Of a DNA stretch of 64,000 bases, positions 36,887-40,812 are shown piece after piece. Both the position numbers and the translations under genes were made by a program. Where the stretch lies: the IMG/VR virus record IMGVR_UViG_3300009514_000001, positions 158,006 to 222,005 of that record; one strand, given 5' to 3'. How positions within the stretch are numbered: the first letter of the stretch is position 1; each line of letters begins with the position of its first letter. The notes under the pieces are model-generated. The model had not been told where the DNA came from, searched no databases, and saw nothing but the letters and a program-made list of their open reading frames with translations.

Positions 36887-37105
36887 TCAGTCTTCCTCAG
36901 CCGGAGGCGACCCGTTGACAGACTTCAGACTGTGGTCCGAGTCCGAGTGAGCACGACGGAAGTACTGGGCGGCTGACTCCAAGGTCTTCTTGGGGTCACA
37001 CTCGACCAAGCCCAAGGCCTTGAGACGCTCACTGGCTGCCTCCCTGGCTTGCTCTTTTTCTTTGTCCGTCATCGGACGAACGGACACGGCGGGAGCTGCT
37101 GACAT
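36887..37105 (-). CDS. Hypothetical protein
   Basis: 72 aa with an AAGGAG SD. Confidence 0.5.
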   Translation of the reverse strand: MSAAPAVSVRPMTDKEKEQAREAASERLKALGLVECDPKKTLESAAQYFRRAHSDSDHSLKSVNGSPPAEED

Positions 37106-37114
37106 GTCGTCTCC

Positions 37115-37555
37115 TTACGACCAGAGAACTACGCCCAGGGCTGTGAGCGAAGCGATGATGCTAGCAACCATCACCGCAGTCGTCTTCCAGTTCTGGGAAC
37201 GGCTGGCGATTTCTGCCACCCGGACCGAAGCATCTATTTGGGCTTGCTTTTCCAACTTCGTTTTCACGTCCCGGAATGCCTCTTTCACCTCGGACAGGTC
37301 CGTGCGAAGGGCCTCAACCACCGACTTCATCGAAGGGTTATTGGCATCCCCTCGGACCAGCAGATTGTCCAGGTACCCAACCAGAAGGTGTACCTGGTCG
37401 ACCCGAGCTGCCAGCTCGGCAGCGCCCTGAATCTTCTTCACCTCTCCGGACGCGTACTGATCTAGCCGTCCGCTGATACGTTCCAGTTCCCTTTCAAACC
37501 CGTCGAGGCGGGCCTCTACTCGGGCTAGGGCTGTTGCTGTGCTATCCGCCGGCAT
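37115..37555 (-). CDS. Coiled-coil protein with a C-terminal transmembrane helix (holin/XhlA-like architecture)
   Basis: Heptad-rich body and a hydrophobic C-terminus AVMVASIIASLTALGVVLW. Confidence 0.5.
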   Translation of the reverse strand: MPADSTATALARVEARLDGFERELERISGRLDQYASGEVKKIQGAAELAARVDQVHLLVGYLDNLLVRGDANNPSMKSVVEALRTDLSEVKEAFRDVKTKLEKQAQIDASVRVAEIASRSQNWKTTAVMVASIIASLTALGVVLWS

Positions 37556-37651
37556 GCAATGTGTCCTTGTGTCTAGATCCTGTCCAGCCCGAGCATCCGT
37601 ATGGTATGAAAGAGCCTCGGCTCTCTTCTAACCTCGACCCATCGAACAAAT

Positions 37652-39115
37652 ATGAAGCAGTACCTCAACCTCCTTCGTGACATCCTGGACCATGGCCAAC
37701 AGAGAGGGGACCGCACAAACACCGGTACTATCAGTCTCTTCGGCCCACAGATGGAGTTCGACCTTCAAGAGGGATTCCCAGCGACCACGACCAAGAAACT
37801 CTTGTTTCGCAAGGTGAAGACGGAGCTTCTCTGGTTTCTTCGAGGAGGAACCAACGTGGCCTGGCTTCACGAGCACAACAACCACATTTGGGACGAGTGG
37901 ATGTTGTCTGACTTGGAAGTTGGAGTCCCCAGCGAAGAAAGACCCCTGATCTGGGTGGACCAGAAAAACGCGACCTCTGCCCCATTCTCCGGAAATCTCA
38001 GCACTCTGGGACTCGATGCCTCAAGAGGGTCGACGGACGACCGACTCCGAAACCTGTGGGTGAAGATCATGCAGAGGTGCTATGACTCCGACCACCACAA
38101 CTTCAGGTTCTACGGCGGAAGGGGGGTGGGTGTCGTCAAAGAGTGGCACGACGTGAACACCTTTGTGCACGGCGTGAAAAACCTACCTAACTGGGGACAC
38201 AAAAACCGTTCGTGGAACGAATACGAACTCGACAAAGACTACTACGGAGCGACAGCCTACGGCCCCGACACCTGCGTATGGCTCCATACGAGCGAGAACA
38301 ACTACTACACCCTGGCAGTATGTCCTGTCCGTATCACACCCCCGACTGGACGTCCCCTGATATACCTAACCCAGGCACACGCGGCACGAGACCTAGACAT
38401 CTCTACCTCTGCCATGAGCAGGTATTTAGAACGTGGCTCCATTGGTCGCCCCTACGGCAGAAGCAAGCGCCTCGAAGGGTGGGGGTTTGAGTACCTCAAG
38501 AGACCGGGAAAATTCCTGAGGATGGCTTTCTCAAAAGGCGATCTGGGCCCGGTGTATGGGTCTATGTGGAGATCATGGCCCAGCACAAACGGAGACATAG
38601 ACCAACTGGCAGGAGTCATCCATGGCATTCGGAACCACCCGGAGTCCAGGCGTCTTCTAGTGAGCGCTTGGAACGTCTCCCTCATTGAGAAGATGGCTTT
38701 ACCTCCCTGCCATATCCAATTCCAATTTTACGTGCGCCACGCCGATGACGGACCGGACTTCCTCGACTGCAAGATGTACCAACGCAGCGCCGACATGTTC
38801 CTCGGGGTGCCTTTCAACATCGCGTCCTACGCCCTGCTGACCCACATGATGGCGCAGGTATGCGAGTTGCGGCCGGGGCGCTTCGTCCACACCTTCGGGG
38901 ACGTCCACATCTACGCAAACCATGTCGACCAGGTCGAAGAACAGCTCTCAAGAGAGCCCGGGGAGGTTCCCTCCCTGTGGCTCAACCCCGACATTGACGA
39001 CATCGACGGCTTTGGTCCGAAGGACATCAGGCTGGTCGACTACAAACACCAAGGCGTCATTCGAGCCCCCATCGCTGTTGGGGGAACCGGATTCATCCCG
39101 ACCATCAAGGAGTAA
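37652..39115 (+). CDS. thyA: Thymidylate synthase with an in-frame endonuclease-like insertion
   Basis: Motifs DRTNTGT, ELLWFLRG, IWDEW, GDLGPVYG, MALPPCH, YQRSADMFLGVPFNIASY and GDVHIY. Confidence 0.95.
   Translation: MKQYLNLLRDILDHGQQRGDRTNTGTISLFGPQMEFDLQEGFPATTTKKLLFRKVKTELLWFLRGGTNVAWLHEHNNHIWDEWMLSDLEVGVPSEERPLIWVDQKNATSAPFSGNLSTLGLDASRGSTDDRLRNLWVKIMQRCYDSDHHNFRFYGGRGVGVVKEWHDVNTFVHGVKNLPNWGHKNRSWNEYELDKDYYGATAYGPDTCVWLHTSENNYYTLAVCPVRITPPTGRPLIYLTQAHAARDLDISTSAMSRYLERGSIGRPYGRSKRLEGWGFEYLKRPGKFLRMAFSKGDLGPVYGSMWRSWPSTNGDIDQLAGVIHGIRNHPESRRLLVSAWNVSLIEKMALPPCHIQFQFYVRHADDGPDFLDCKMYQRSADMFLGVPFNIASYALLTHMMAQVCELRPGRFVHTFGDVHIYANHVDQVEEQLSREPGEVPSLWLNPDIDDIDGFGPKDIRLVDYKHQGVIRAPIAVGGTGFIPTIKE
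37901..38536 (+). mobile_element. In-frame HNH-type homing-endonuclease-like insert with an HTH (about 212 aa) inside ThyA
   Basis: Lies between IWDEW and GDLGP. Sequence W..IMQRC...YGGRGV.V..EW...F...ELDKD...YGPDTCVW....NN, followed by a NUMOD1-like HTH AARDLDISTSAMSRYL. Confidence 0.75.
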
Positions 39116-39119
39116 TGCC

Positions 39120-39422
39120 ATGAAAGCCTTCACCCTCTTCTTTCTCCTCGCCTTCCTCTTCGTGGGCTGCGCCGCCGGACCCAACGACCTGGTCGGACAG
39201 GCCAACGACTCCGGAGACCTGGCGGGATTCTGGAAGGGCCTCTGGCATGGGTTCATCATGCCCATTTCCTGGTTCATCTCCCTGTTCGACTCGGACGTGA
39301 CCATCTACGAAGTCCATAACAGCGGAGGGTGGTACACCTTCGGCTTCTGGCTGGGGGTCAGCACGGTCTACGGAGGCGGCACGACGGCTGGTCGCAAGGT
39401 CCGAAATGGAGGAGAGGCGTAA
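39120..39422 (+). CDS. Small membrane lipoprotein
   Basis: Lipobox FVGC after a hydrophobic signal; GFWKGLWHG...IYEVHNSGGWY. Confidence 0.7.
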   Translation: MKAFTLFFLLAFLFVGCAAGPNDLVGQANDSGDLAGFWKGLWHGFIMPISWFISLFDSDVTIYEVHNSGGWYTFGFWLGVSTVYGGGTTAGRKVRNGGEA

Positions 39423-39424
39423 AC

Positions 39425-39760
39425 CTATTCCTTCATGAGGTCCTGAACGACCTCGTGGGCCATCCTGGACATCGGGTTGGCCCGATAGCGCCCAGTCCGG
39501 TAGACCGCGTTGGCGAGGGACTTCGATAGCCCTGAGAGAATCTTCCTCATCAGCGGATGGTTCGGGTCCCGGTGAACCTGGGTGAAGAACAAATCCAGGT
39601 ACTGACGGACGTTATGGATGTCCGCCCCCGCCTCGTCACGGATACGTTCGAGGTCATCTCCCCACACAAGCTCGTCACCAGACGCCGCGGCCTCACCCTC
39701 CCTCAGCGCATTGGCGAGGGCCCGGAGAAGCTCCTGGTGTACCTGGGCGCTCTTGTCCAT
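39425..39760 (-). CDS. Hypothetical protein
   Basis: 111 aa; start overlaps the upstream stop. Confidence 0.6.
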   Translation of the reverse strand: MDKSAQVHQELLRALANALREGEAAASGDELVWGDDLERIRDEAGADIHNVRQYLDLFFTQVHRDPNHPLMRKILSGLSKSLANAVYRTGRYRANPMSRMAHEVVQDLMKE

Positions 39761-40812
39761 CAGTCGAGGGTGTGTATGATTCCGGTGTAATACCAGAGAA
39801 GGTGAATATCCCCTAGCATATCTACCGTCAATTGATCTGCCCGGCCAAGATCCCCTACCGCCTCGGCTCGTCTCAGGAGGGTCTTTTTCACCTTCTCTCG
39901 ACTCTTTAGGGACTCTTTTAGAGCCCTCCCCGGATTCTTACTCAAGAATCCCTCTGCCGCTTCCCTAGAACCCTCCAGGTATGCCTCTCGGGGGCTTCCC
40001 CACCGTGAAGCTCTCTTGTGTTTAGCCCCTTCAAGGATATCCAAGAGAGCATCCTTGAGCTGGACGTTCTCAGTCGAGGCCGCCAGGCGAATCATCTCGT
40101 TCCGTAGATTTTGGTCCACTTCGTTACTCCTACTAAAAGTGGTCTCGTCGAACAACGAGCCCTTCTTCTTGCGTCCCTCCCACTTGGCCTTCCACCGCTT
40201 CTTCCACTGCTGGTACTTGCGGTTCCAGAGACGGAACTTGGCCTTGTTCTTGGGCTCCCAAGGGCCGACGAGGGGCTTCGGCTTGTGGAGGCTGCGAATC
40301 TGGACCTTCTTGCCCTTGTAGTTCGTCTGGCGTCGGCCACCGTCACGAGCCCGGTTGAACATCATCGGACTGGAGTCGAGGTCGACCTTGCCCGTCTGCG
40401 GGTTCTTCTGGATAGGGCGGCGGCGGCGACTTCGACGCTTGCGGCGGCGACGCATCTTCCGGAGACGCTTGCGCATCTTGCCGACGTCGCGAGCGAACAC
40501 CTCGCGGACCGCGGCCTCTTGCATCAAGGGGGACAGGAGCTGGAGAAGGTCGTTGGCGGTTCTGAGGGTGCCGGACTGGTCACCTCTATCCCAGAACACC
40601 CCCTCCGGGCTGAGATGCGGAAGTTCCGGACTCACCCCTGTGCTGGCAACGATAGAGAGGTCCCCAACCCGGTAGCTGTCCTCAGCCATTAGCACGCCGC
40701 GCATACAGGTCCCGAACCTCCAGTCGAGACCGGAGGCCGTCAGGACGTCTCTGATGACGGGGTCTGTCAGTGCAGGTTCTTTGTACTGTCCGTGAGGCAT
40801 CGTCTTCTCCAT
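39760..40812 (-). CDS. Highly basic hypothetical (possible virion-internal) protein
   Basis: Arg/Lys tracts and the LRNEMIRLAA...LLDIL motif. Confidence 0.6.
   Translation of the reverse strand: MEKTMPHGQYKEPALTDPVIRDVLTASGLDWRFGTCMRGVLMAEDSYRVGDLSIVASTGVSPELPHLSPEGVFWDRGDQSGTLRTANDLLQLLSPLMQEAAVREVFARDVGKMRKRLRKMRRRRKRRSRRRRPIQKNPQTGKVDLDSSPMMFNRARDGGRRQTNYKGKKVQIRSLHKPKPLVGPWEPKNKAKFRLWNRKYQQWKKRWKAKWEGRKKKGSLFDETTFSRSNEVDQNLRNEMIRLAASTENVQLKDALLDILEGAKHKRASRWGSPREAYLEGSREAAEGFLSKNPGRALKESLKSREKVKKTLLRRAEAVGDLGRADQLTVDMLGDIHLLWYYTGIIHTLD

Follow-up and report, generated by a model that had tools for sequence, protein, structure and literature searches.

[quoted passage not shown]

A thymidylate synthase gene (thyA) of a jumbo phage carries, in frame and with no detectable intron or intein, a complete homing-endonuclease-like protein with a predicted DNA-binding domain. 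Among relatives, this element is common, moves between genomes and is found in the only thymidylate synthase gene of two cultured bacteria. The gene lies in a 64,000-nt stretch of the IMG/VR record IMGVR_UViG_3300009514_000001 (positions 158,006 to 222,005), hereafter the window. The 212-codon insert between IWDEW and GDLGPVYG described in an earlier note was confirmed at exactly the same coordinates. By contrast, the interpretation of that note, i.e. a splicing-free homing element tolerated as a domain of a bifunctional protein, with a co-conversion tract reaching the active-site codons, is only partly supported: it largely holds at the level of the family, whereas for the copy in the window the co-conversion tract and any nuclease activity remain unproven. 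The coordinates of the features are collected in Table 1.

Table 1. Features of the insert-bearing thyA gene (positions in the window; aa, residues of the 487-aa product).
Position (strand)	Feature	Supporting observations
37652..39115 (+)	thyA ORF, 487 aa plus stop, read as one polypeptide	Single Pfam PF00303 match, residues 2-476 against profile positions 1-266 (E 1.5e-108), interrupted only by the insert; AF2 model pLDDT 92.8
37652..37900 (+)	ThyA N-terminal part (aa 1-83), ending in IWDEW (aa 79-83)	GC3 0.71
37901..38536 (+)	In-frame insert, aa 84-295 (212 codons)	Colinear with whole free-standing ~200-aa proteins; GC3 0.68
37901..37939 (+)	N-terminal linker (aa 84-96), starting with an ATG that is not conserved in relatives	pLDDT 72-79
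37940..38311 (+)	Module N-subdomain (aa 97-220): first strand RPLIWV, helix W..M..RCY, YGGRG hairpin, predicted beta-beta-alpha unit with D194-K195-D196 and N216	Invariant residues in alignments; predicted secondary structure; no Pfam family; only weak PDB match PacI (Z 4.5)
38231..38239 (+)	D-K-D motif, where HNH enzymes carry D-H	DKD in 142 of 145 module copies scanned; invariant in two alignments (A3 and A4)
38312..38503 (+)	Module C-subdomain (aa 221-284): predicted NUMOD1/I-HmuI-type helix-turn-helix DNA-binding domain	Z 6.2-6.3 to 1i3j/1t2t (I-TevI) and 1u3e (I-HmuI); hhalign to I-HmuI, probability 90.6; PF22083 or PF07453 match some relatives
38513..38530 (+)	Closing strand FLRMAF with invariant R290, also the last element of the free-standing homologues	Alignments and model
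38537..39079 (+)	ThyA C-terminal part (aa 296-476), from GDLGPVYG, with SRR, PCH, QRSxD...PFN and GDxHxY intact	Predicted dimer interface only in core residues
38537..38713 (+)	Proximal downstream stretch up to the PCH codons with lower GC3 (0.62); candidate co-conversion tract, unproven here	Analogous tract demonstrated in Enterococcus phages
39080..39112 (+)	11-aa C-terminal extension after APIAV	Not seen in the relatives aligned; predicted disordered

We first investigated the nature of the insert. It matches PHROG families labelled 'HNH endonuclease' (phrog_2081, E 1.7e-28; also 374, 3377 and 953) and is therefore not a chance open frame. The free-standing homologues of ~190-210 aa begin at its first strand and end at its last strand. 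The best PHROG hit, phrog_2081, consists of ORFs inside group I introns of Bastillevirinae DNA polymerase genes (PMC11878797), and a Staphylococcus phage homologue lies between two DNA polymerase fragments, with a sub-threshold Intron_gpI hit (21.6 bits against a gathering score of 50, E 0.0068) just downstream of it. The helix-turn-helix (HTH) proposed in the earlier note is real: residues 133-195 of the module model superpose on the DNA-binding domains of I-TevI and I-HmuI with an rmsd of 1.2-1.9 A, and, among the 37 aligned members, PF22083 matched 10 and PF07453 matched 4.

On the other hand, the 'HNH-type' of the earlier note is only a label. No Pfam HNH model matches the insert, any of the 36 relatives aligned with it or five further relatives, a search for HNH_3 in the 'SIDRID...NCRWA' relatives gave no hit, and NCBIfam gave nothing; only the PHROG family names say 'HNH'. 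The position of the HNH catalytic His, assigned by motif and secondary structure, is K195. N216, whose role as a metal ligand on the helix is inferred only, is nearly invariant. The model shows strands 191-194 and 209-212 followed by helix 213-219. Although Foldseek puts I-HmuI first (probability 1.0, E 1.7e-3), structural superposition (VIA-align) and hhalign align only the HTH of this enzyme, and PDB sequence searches found nothing else. The module is thus not a canonical HNH nuclease, and its nuclease activity, shown for no member of this family, is inferred only.

Then, we searched for signs of splicing. No Rfam group I or II intron was found at E<=10 in positions 37000-39800, nor in the loci of three relatives, whereas the intron-bearing Staphylococcus phage locus used as a control gave the weak hit mentioned above. 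The insert is no longer than the free-standing protein, which leaves no room for a ribozyme. Its first residue is Met here and varies in homologues, it ends with ...AFSK before Gly with no terminal His-Asn, Pfam finds no Hint or intein family, and the fold is not Hint-like. The absence of intein and intron hallmarks reported in the earlier note is therefore confirmed. Moreover, the frame is kept open into both ThyA parts in about 100 clusters of <=50% identity, and metatranscriptome contigs span both junctions of the Calidithermus-type gene, although these are assembled contigs from libraries that may contain DNA. Removal of the insert by a so-far-unknown RNA or protein splicing mechanism, giving a normal ~275-aa ThyA, might still be considered, as thymidylate synthase genes are classic hosts of introns and inteins, relatives of the module are intron-encoded and some phage introns splice only in vivo (PMC11878797). 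Given these observations, we regard it as very unlikely.

We also considered that the N-terminal linker of the insert (xVGxPSxxRPLxW) might be a degenerate copy of GDLGPVYGxQWRxW, which would make the two insertion sites found in the family (sites A and B) the same site. This was rejected, since most site A members instead have RxPYxLxR there and the free-standing proteins start at that strand.

To evaluate the mobility of the element, we examined its distribution. The same module sits in ThyA in more than 100 protein clusters, at two loop sites, in cultured phages, bacteria and an archaeal MAG, a very large family of which the earlier note was unaware. In Enterococcus phages (Schiekvirus), only 2 of 31 near-identical genomes carry it. 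Against the insert-less phage Ben, mismatches per 60 nt are 1-3 upstream and fall 18, 12, 7, 3, 0 downstream. Between the two carriers, the insert plus ~250 nt of 3' flank (nt 271-1160, i.e. 890 nt) differs at only 3 sites, while there are 24 differences in nt 1-270 and 20 in nt 1161-1476, so that dS is 0.008 against 0.58 and 0.21. The backgrounds differ by 6-9% elsewhere in thyA. This is a co-conversion tract, which ends just past the catalytic Cys codon. Calidithermus and a Meiothermus MAG also show a mosaic centred on the module. In addition, using ThyA cores extracted piecewise, modules cluster by insertion site (7-8 changes against 31-42 when shuffled, with a 99% split), whereas carriers are scattered on the ThyA-core tree (21-23 changes). 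The AU test gave P = 0.035.

For the window itself, the GC3 dip downstream of the insert is real (0.62 for aa 297-354 vs. 0.80 for aa 355-476; Fisher test, P = 0.011), but it is not unusual for this genome, where 10.7% of 58-codon windows are at or below 0.62. A protein-level mosaic test against insert-less relatives gave no signal (proximal/distal identity ratio of 1.02 against a background of 1.06 +/- 0.10). Among site A carriers, this ratio was 1.16 +/- 0.14, which is suggestive but confounded by divergence. No close insert-less relative was found, the best being about 65% identical; only two distant, insert-less thyA loci were detected among relatives of this phage in IMG/VR, and no sequencing run was listed for the window. 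A co-conversion tract is therefore only a candidate here.

We then looked for evidence that insert-bearing ThyA is functional. The insert-bearing gene is the only ThyA gene, with no ThyX, in Calidithermus chliarophilus and Demequina iriomotensis, and in Calidithermus it sits directly upstream of folA. These two bacteria indicate that an insert-bearing ThyA works. In the window, the catalytic and substrate-binding motifs (DRT, SRR, PCH, QRSxD, PFN, GDxHxY) can be read directly from the translation. The core of the model is complete and superposes on E. coli and M. tuberculosis ThyA with 262-263 residues aligned at 0.9 A and Z about 40 (263 of 264 residues for E. coli). The predicted homodimer scores 0.77 against 0.00 for the controls, with no insert residue in the interface; these are predictions, not measurements. 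Unlike the usual ThyA, which has a free C-terminal carboxylate directly after the conserved ...A-V/I end, this copy has 11 extra residues. As the enzyme uses its C-terminus to close the active site, this extension could impair it. In this phage the insert, and perhaps thyA itself, might thus be an evolutionary leftover, with an element that no longer moves. The lack of a DHFR or ThyX partner gene, the single copy of the module in the phage and the absence of close relatives showing recent movement are in favour of such a relic. However, all ThyA catalytic motifs and all invariant module residues are intact, the frame is open over 487 codons and the models are confident, so that this possibility appears improbable.

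Alternatively, the module might be a nuclease-dead, sequence-specific DNA-binding domain kept because it benefits the host enzyme, for example by tethering ThyA to DNA or the replisome, or by autoregulation, its patchy distribution then reflecting ordinary recombination and loss rather than self-promoted homing. The replacement of the catalytic His by Lys, the lack of any nuclease profile match, the age and breadth of the family (module identity of only 35-55%), the purifying selection on the module (pN/pS about 0.25 in the Thermaceae pair) and its maintenance in the only thyA of two bacteria are in favour of this exaptation. Moreover, the N-domain occurs in tandem copies in some proteins (protein P0159) and is fused to other catalytic domains, such as a DEDD exonuclease, in others (protein P0012), a pattern that fits a pure DNA-binding role. 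Nevertheless, only 2 of 31 near-identical phages carry the module, a near-identical insert and 3' tract in backgrounds with dS of 0.2-0.6 is the classic signature of a selfish sweep, the module tree follows the insertion site and not the host gene, and the closest relatives are intron-borne and free-standing ORFs of the homing-endonuclease type. The conservation of D-K-D and N216 also looks like an active site rather than a decayed one. We therefore consider exaptation unlikely, although less so than the two other alternatives.

The explanation that we favour, with reasonable but not full confidence, is that the 636-bp insert is a complete homing-endonuclease-like gene, minus its start and stop codons, sitting in frame in a permissive surface loop of thyA. 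In this view, it is removed neither at the RNA nor at the protein level; the module would fold on its own and project from the loop, while the ThyA core would fold and dimerise normally and stay catalytically competent. At the DNA level, it would behave as a site-specific mobile element, spreading into insert-less thyA alleles by break-induced gene conversion and carrying about 250 nt of 3' flank with it. Our analysis establishes the anatomy of the insert, the absence of splicing hallmarks, the size of the family, recent transfer with co-conversion in relatives and the sole-thyA status in two bacteria. By contrast, we only infer that the module itself makes the break by site-specific cleavage (possibly using Lys where HNH enzymes use His, with the ThyA dimer perhaps supplying two heads), that the copy in the window is or was mobile, and that the enzyme of this phage is active.

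The closest system is the ShiLan domain of actinophage DNA methylases (PMC9957025, PMC11855218), which is also an insertion in a phage gene that stays open in the host frame without detectable intron or intein machinery, with a patchy distribution and a recombination history typical of homing, and which is also thought to remain in the host protein as an extruded domain. However, in ShiLan the HNH endonuclease is hidden in another reading frame and the in-frame peptide is a featureless hairpin, whereas here the endonuclease-like protein is itself in the host frame as a predicted well-folded two-domain module, the host is ThyA, there are two insertion sites and bacterial chromosomes are also invaded. 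Modular homing endonucleases of the I-HmuI/I-TevI type and the intron ORFs of phrog_2081 share the C-terminal HTH, the size (~200 aa) and the two-part architecture, relatives are encoded in group I introns of phage DNA polymerase genes, and thyA/td is a classic target gene; but here there is no GIY-YIG or canonical HNH catalytic domain, no intron surrounds the ORF, and the ORF is fused in frame on both sides. HNH-containing inteins are also in-frame insertions of an endonuclease-type domain into a conserved nucleotide-metabolism gene, but they possess Hint splicing blocks, an N-terminal Cys/Ser and a C-terminal His-Asn followed by Cys/Ser/Thr, none of which is present here, and the insert is predicted to stay in the mature protein. 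Free-standing homing endonuclease genes that split or abut host genes (T4 mobE and seg genes, the Aeh1 nrdA split) are likewise intron-less and intein-less, spread by gene conversion and co-convert flanking markers, but have their own start and stop codons and either lie between genes or split the host gene into two polypeptides, whereas a single polypeptide is kept here. Finally, the 'small domain' of Lactobacillus casei-type ThyA occupies the same variable surface region, and the second insertion site (after QWRxW) coincides with that loop, but this insertion is about 50 aa, is not related to DNA-binding proteins and is not known to be mobile.

It is possible, although less likely than not, that homing endonuclease genes have a third way, apart from introns and inteins, to live inside essential genes, i.e. 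as a self-folding domain in a permissive loop that is never removed. The ThyA module would then be an active endonuclease of a new catalytic variety, a beta-beta-alpha unit using Lys (D-K-D) instead of His, which would work while fused to ThyA, exploit the ThyA dimer to bring two cleavage heads together, and have invaded thyA at two sites across phages, bacteria and archaea. These proteins are filed today as plain 'thymidylate synthase' or 'HNH endonuclease'. The family puts a widespread, uncharacterised 'HNH-labelled' phage domain with a D-K-D motif within reach of direct testing in cultured systems (Enterococcus phages A2 and 163 against insert-less relatives, Calidithermus and Demequina), and such modules could be compact, sequence-specific DNA-targeting domains that tolerate being embedded in other enzymes. 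Self-splicing is usually regarded as the price that a homing endonuclease gene pays to sit inside a conserved gene. This family suggests that splicing is dispensable if the element lands in a tolerant loop and folds independently, a view that would change how insertions in conserved genes are annotated, and it offers a natural, abundant model for domain insertion and for how mobile elements become permanent protein domains.

The window is the last 64 kb of a 222,005-bp IMG/VR virus record with direct terminal repeats. A single ORF in it encodes a thymidylate synthase in which 212 codons separate the motifs IWDEW and GDLGPVYG. The Pfam thymidylate synthase model covers residues 2-476 of the product as one stretch, over profile positions 1-266 (E 1.5e-108). 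The observation made in the earlier note therefore held, the limits of the insert being exactly those it had given. The insert is not a chance open frame, as it matches PHROG families named "HNH endonuclease" (phrog_2081 at E 1.7e-28), and its GC content equals that of the rest of the gene.

Positions of the features examined (window coordinates unless stated otherwise)
Feature	Position	Strand	Description
thyA ORF	37652-39115	+	487 aa
End of IWDEW	37900		Last nucleotide before the insert
Insert	37901-38536		aa 84-295, 212 codons
First codon of the insert	37901-37903		ATG, not conserved in relatives
Start of GDLGPVYG	38537		First nucleotide after the insert
C-terminal end of thyA	39080-39115		11 residues past the usual ...APIAV end; tail predicted disordered; last codons AAGGAG double as a ribosome-binding site for the next gene
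Gene just downstream of thyA	39121-39422	+	Starts MKAFTLFFLLAFLFVGC..., which looks like a lipoprotein signal peptide with a lipobox; small Gly/Trp-rich protein
ORF	39760-40812	-	350 aa; extremely basic stretch (runs of Arg and Lys) in its middle and a second Lys-rich region
Short-unit repeat upstream of the Calidithermus thyA	2300-2520 of locus L015		GCCGATAGCCGA-like; very high contig depth and many rearranged joints in all four runs; probably a dispersed repeat family

To identify the origin of the insert, we used it to search 1.8 billion cluster representatives, which gave 4,674 hits at E<=0.001. The top 150 representatives and the hits from earlier searches were then classified. About 40 are ThyA proteins with the module at the same place (site A, between IWDEW and GDLGPVYG), about 60 are ThyA proteins with the module in the next loop (site B, after QWRxW and before IDQ), 30 are free-standing proteins of about 190-210 aa, and 15 are other fusions. 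The site B inserts often carry an extra domain of ~100 aa in front of the module. In many of them (proteins P0013, P0018 and P0019 and loci L014, L017, L019 and L020), it is a beta-rich domain of ~100-130 aa with a conserved "...Y.IQF..TG..." pattern, which site A inserts and the free-standing proteins lack. Among the other architectures, the same module is fused N-terminally to a DEDD/RNase T-type exonuclease domain in proteins P0012 and P0041 (PF00929, a Pfam assignment obtained for P0012), protein P0159 carries three tandem copies of the N-subdomain, and protein P0070 carries two module types. The free-standing proteins are colinear with the whole insert, starting at its first strand (R-x-h-h-x-V) and ending at its last (h-h-R-x-x-L, with R290 invariant). 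The insert is therefore an entire gene of that family without its start and stop codons. Members of phrog_2081 are ORFs inside group I introns of Bastillevirinae DNA polymerase genes, and have no recognisable catalytic domain (PMC11878797). In addition, a Staphylococcus phage homologue lies between two DNA polymerase fragments, with an Intron_gpI hit just downstream that is sub-threshold (E 0.0068, below the Rfam gathering score).

We then examined the predicted structure of the module, which alone is modelled with a pLDDT of 92 and a pTM of 0.85. Its C-terminal third (residues about 221-284 of the window's ThyA) superposes on the DNA-binding HTH of I-TevI and I-HmuI (Z 6.2-6.3, rmsd 1.2-1.9 A) and aligns to I-HmuI by hhalign with a probability of 90.6. 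Moreover, Pfam finds I-HmuI_NUMOD-like in 10 and NUMOD1 in 4 of the 37 aligned members. In contrast, the N-terminal two thirds have no Pfam, NCBIfam or PDB sequence match, and the only structural match, a weak one, is to the HNH enzyme PacI (Z 4.5). This part contains a strand-loop-strand-helix unit whose sequence pattern resembles HNH_3-type motifs, although this resemblance is our own reading, supported by relatives of the "SIDRID...NCRWA" type. The position of the catalytic His is occupied by Lys: D-K-D occurs in 142 of 145 copies and is invariant in the alignments. The term "HNH-type" used in the earlier note is thus a label and not an established membership.

To determine whether the insert could be removed, we searched for intron and intein features. 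Rfam finds no intron at E<=10 in positions 37000-39800, nor in the loci of three relatives, and the insert is no longer than the free-standing ORF, so that a ribozyme core has no room. The first residue of the insert varies (M, S, T, I, R, A), and no terminal His-Asn or following Cys/Ser/Thr is conserved. Furthermore, the frame is kept open into the downstream ThyA part in about 100 clusters that are at most 50% identical to one another. When reads were placed on the Calidithermus-type gene, contigs from two metatranscriptomic libraries ran unbroken across both junctions and no spliced joint appeared in them, although these are assembled contigs and DNA carry-over cannot be excluded. One low-depth contig in a probable DNA run skips exactly 630 nt (210 codons), but it carries many mismatches and is most simply another organism's insert-less allele. 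The ATG at the start of the insert could allow separate translation of a product made of the module and the ThyA C-terminus, although no clear ribosome-binding site was seen upstream.

Then, we investigated the impact of the insert on the enzyme. The full-length model has a pLDDT of 92.8, and its core superposes on E. coli and M. tuberculosis ThyA over 262-263 residues at 0.9 A (Z about 40). The insert is therefore a pure addition. A predicted homodimer scores 0.77 against 0.00 for three controls, with an interface made only of core residues, none of them between 84 and 295, although this prediction may partly reflect memory of solved ThyA dimers. The C-terminal tail of this copy is unusual, and ThyA normally uses its terminal carboxylate to close the active site. 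Over its whole record, the phage has no DHFR (PF00186) and no ThyX (PF02511), so its ThyA would depend on host folate recycling. Cellular genomes give stronger evidence that the enzyme keeps working. Seven loci in bacterial and archaeal genomes carry the module, all of them in thyA at site B. Insert-bearing thyA occurs in an archaeal MAG (Thaumarchaeota, L020) as well as in Chloroflexota and Acidobacteriota MAGs (L014, L019), and the element is therefore not confined to phages. The genome of Fictibacillus nanhaiensis (L018) holds a normal 265-aa thyA and a second, Bacillus-phage-type thyA with a site B insert, which is probably prophage-borne. However, in Calidithermus chliarophilus DSM 9957 and Demequina iriomotensis NBRC 109399, the insert-bearing gene is the only ThyA match and there is no ThyX. 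In Calidithermus, it is followed directly by folA, in an ordinary chromosomal setting. Unless these isolates are thymine auxotrophs, or the drafts are missing a gene, the fusion must be a functional thymidylate synthase.

We next looked for traces of mobility. Cultured phages carry the fusion, namely Enterococcus phages vB_EfaM_A2 and 163, Tenacibaculum phages PTm1 and PTm5, and Bacillus phages Kioshi and 015DV002. Among 31 Schiekvirus-type genomes sharing the surrounding genes at 86-97% identity, only A2 and 163 have the insert. Compared with the insert-less phage Ben, A2 shows 1-3 mismatches per 60 nt right up to the insertion point and 18, 12, 7, 3, then 0 downstream, and the small loop segment of Ben is replaced in A2. 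Between A2 and 163, nt 1-270 of thyA differ at 24 sites, nt 271-1160 (at most 18 nt of 5' flank, the insert, and 248 nt of 3' flank) at only 3 sites, and nt 1161-1476 at 20 sites. The corresponding dS values are 0.58, 0.008, 0 and 0.21. The shared tract ends about 60 nt past the catalytic Cys codon. This is the signature of a recent horizontal sweep of the element with a one-sided co-conversion tract. A second case was found between Calidithermus and a Meiothermus MAG, where the gene ends have a pS of 0.32-0.42 and a pN of 0.20-0.25, while the centre (aa 61-390, the module plus both flanks) has a pS of about 0.13 and a pN of about 0.03. Within the module, pN/pS is about 0.25.

The phylogenies point the same way. 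On a ThyA-core tree, site A carriers need at least 23 changes (28 when shuffled) and site B carriers at least 21. On the module tree, site A needs 7 changes (31 when shuffled) and site B needs 8 (42 when shuffled), with a split supported at 99%. Forcing the hosts of the window's own module clade to be monophyletic costs 68 log-likelihood units (AU p=0.035), although this group was named after the trees had been seen. Modules therefore track their target site, not their host gene.

In the window's own copy, all invariant module residues and all ThyA motifs are present, and it is the only copy of the module in the phage. Its best relatives are 50-54% identical in the insert and the closest insert-less ThyAs are about 60-65% identical, a divergence too large to reveal recent movement here. 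The drop in GC3 downstream of the insert is real (0.62 against 0.80, p=0.011), but 10.7% of the 58-codon windows in this genome are as low. A protein-level mosaic test gave no signal, and a slight excess similarity of the proximal segment among carriers is only suggestive. The interpretation proposed in the earlier note, a splicing-free homing element with a co-conversion tract reaching the active-site codons, is partly supported. The candidate tract has about the same length as the one shown in the Enterococcus phages, which is consistent with this idea for the window's copy but does not prove it.

In the literature searched, we found no description of this ThyA insert. The closest published concept is the ShiLan domain of actinophage methylases, an in-frame, non-splicing, actively homing insertion whose HNH gene is hidden in another frame. 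The ThyA insert is an in-frame, splice-free, homing-endonuclease-like module, and it belongs to a large family that is present in public data but, as far as these searches show, undescribed.

Whereas the sweep and its one-sided tract are observed in relatives, their cause is inferred. The tract may reflect a cut or recognition site downstream of the insertion point, in which case the flank of the donor would also serve as the immune allele. That the module itself is the nuclease is likewise an inference: the invariant D-K-D and N216 look like an active site, and Lys could act as the general base, but no activity is known for any member, and a purely DNA-binding, exapted role is the main rival. 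In the most likely model, the gene is translated as one chain, and the module folds independently and projects from a tolerant loop of the variable "small domain" region of ThyA. The element would spread by break-induced gene conversion into insert-less alleles, carrying 3' flank with it.
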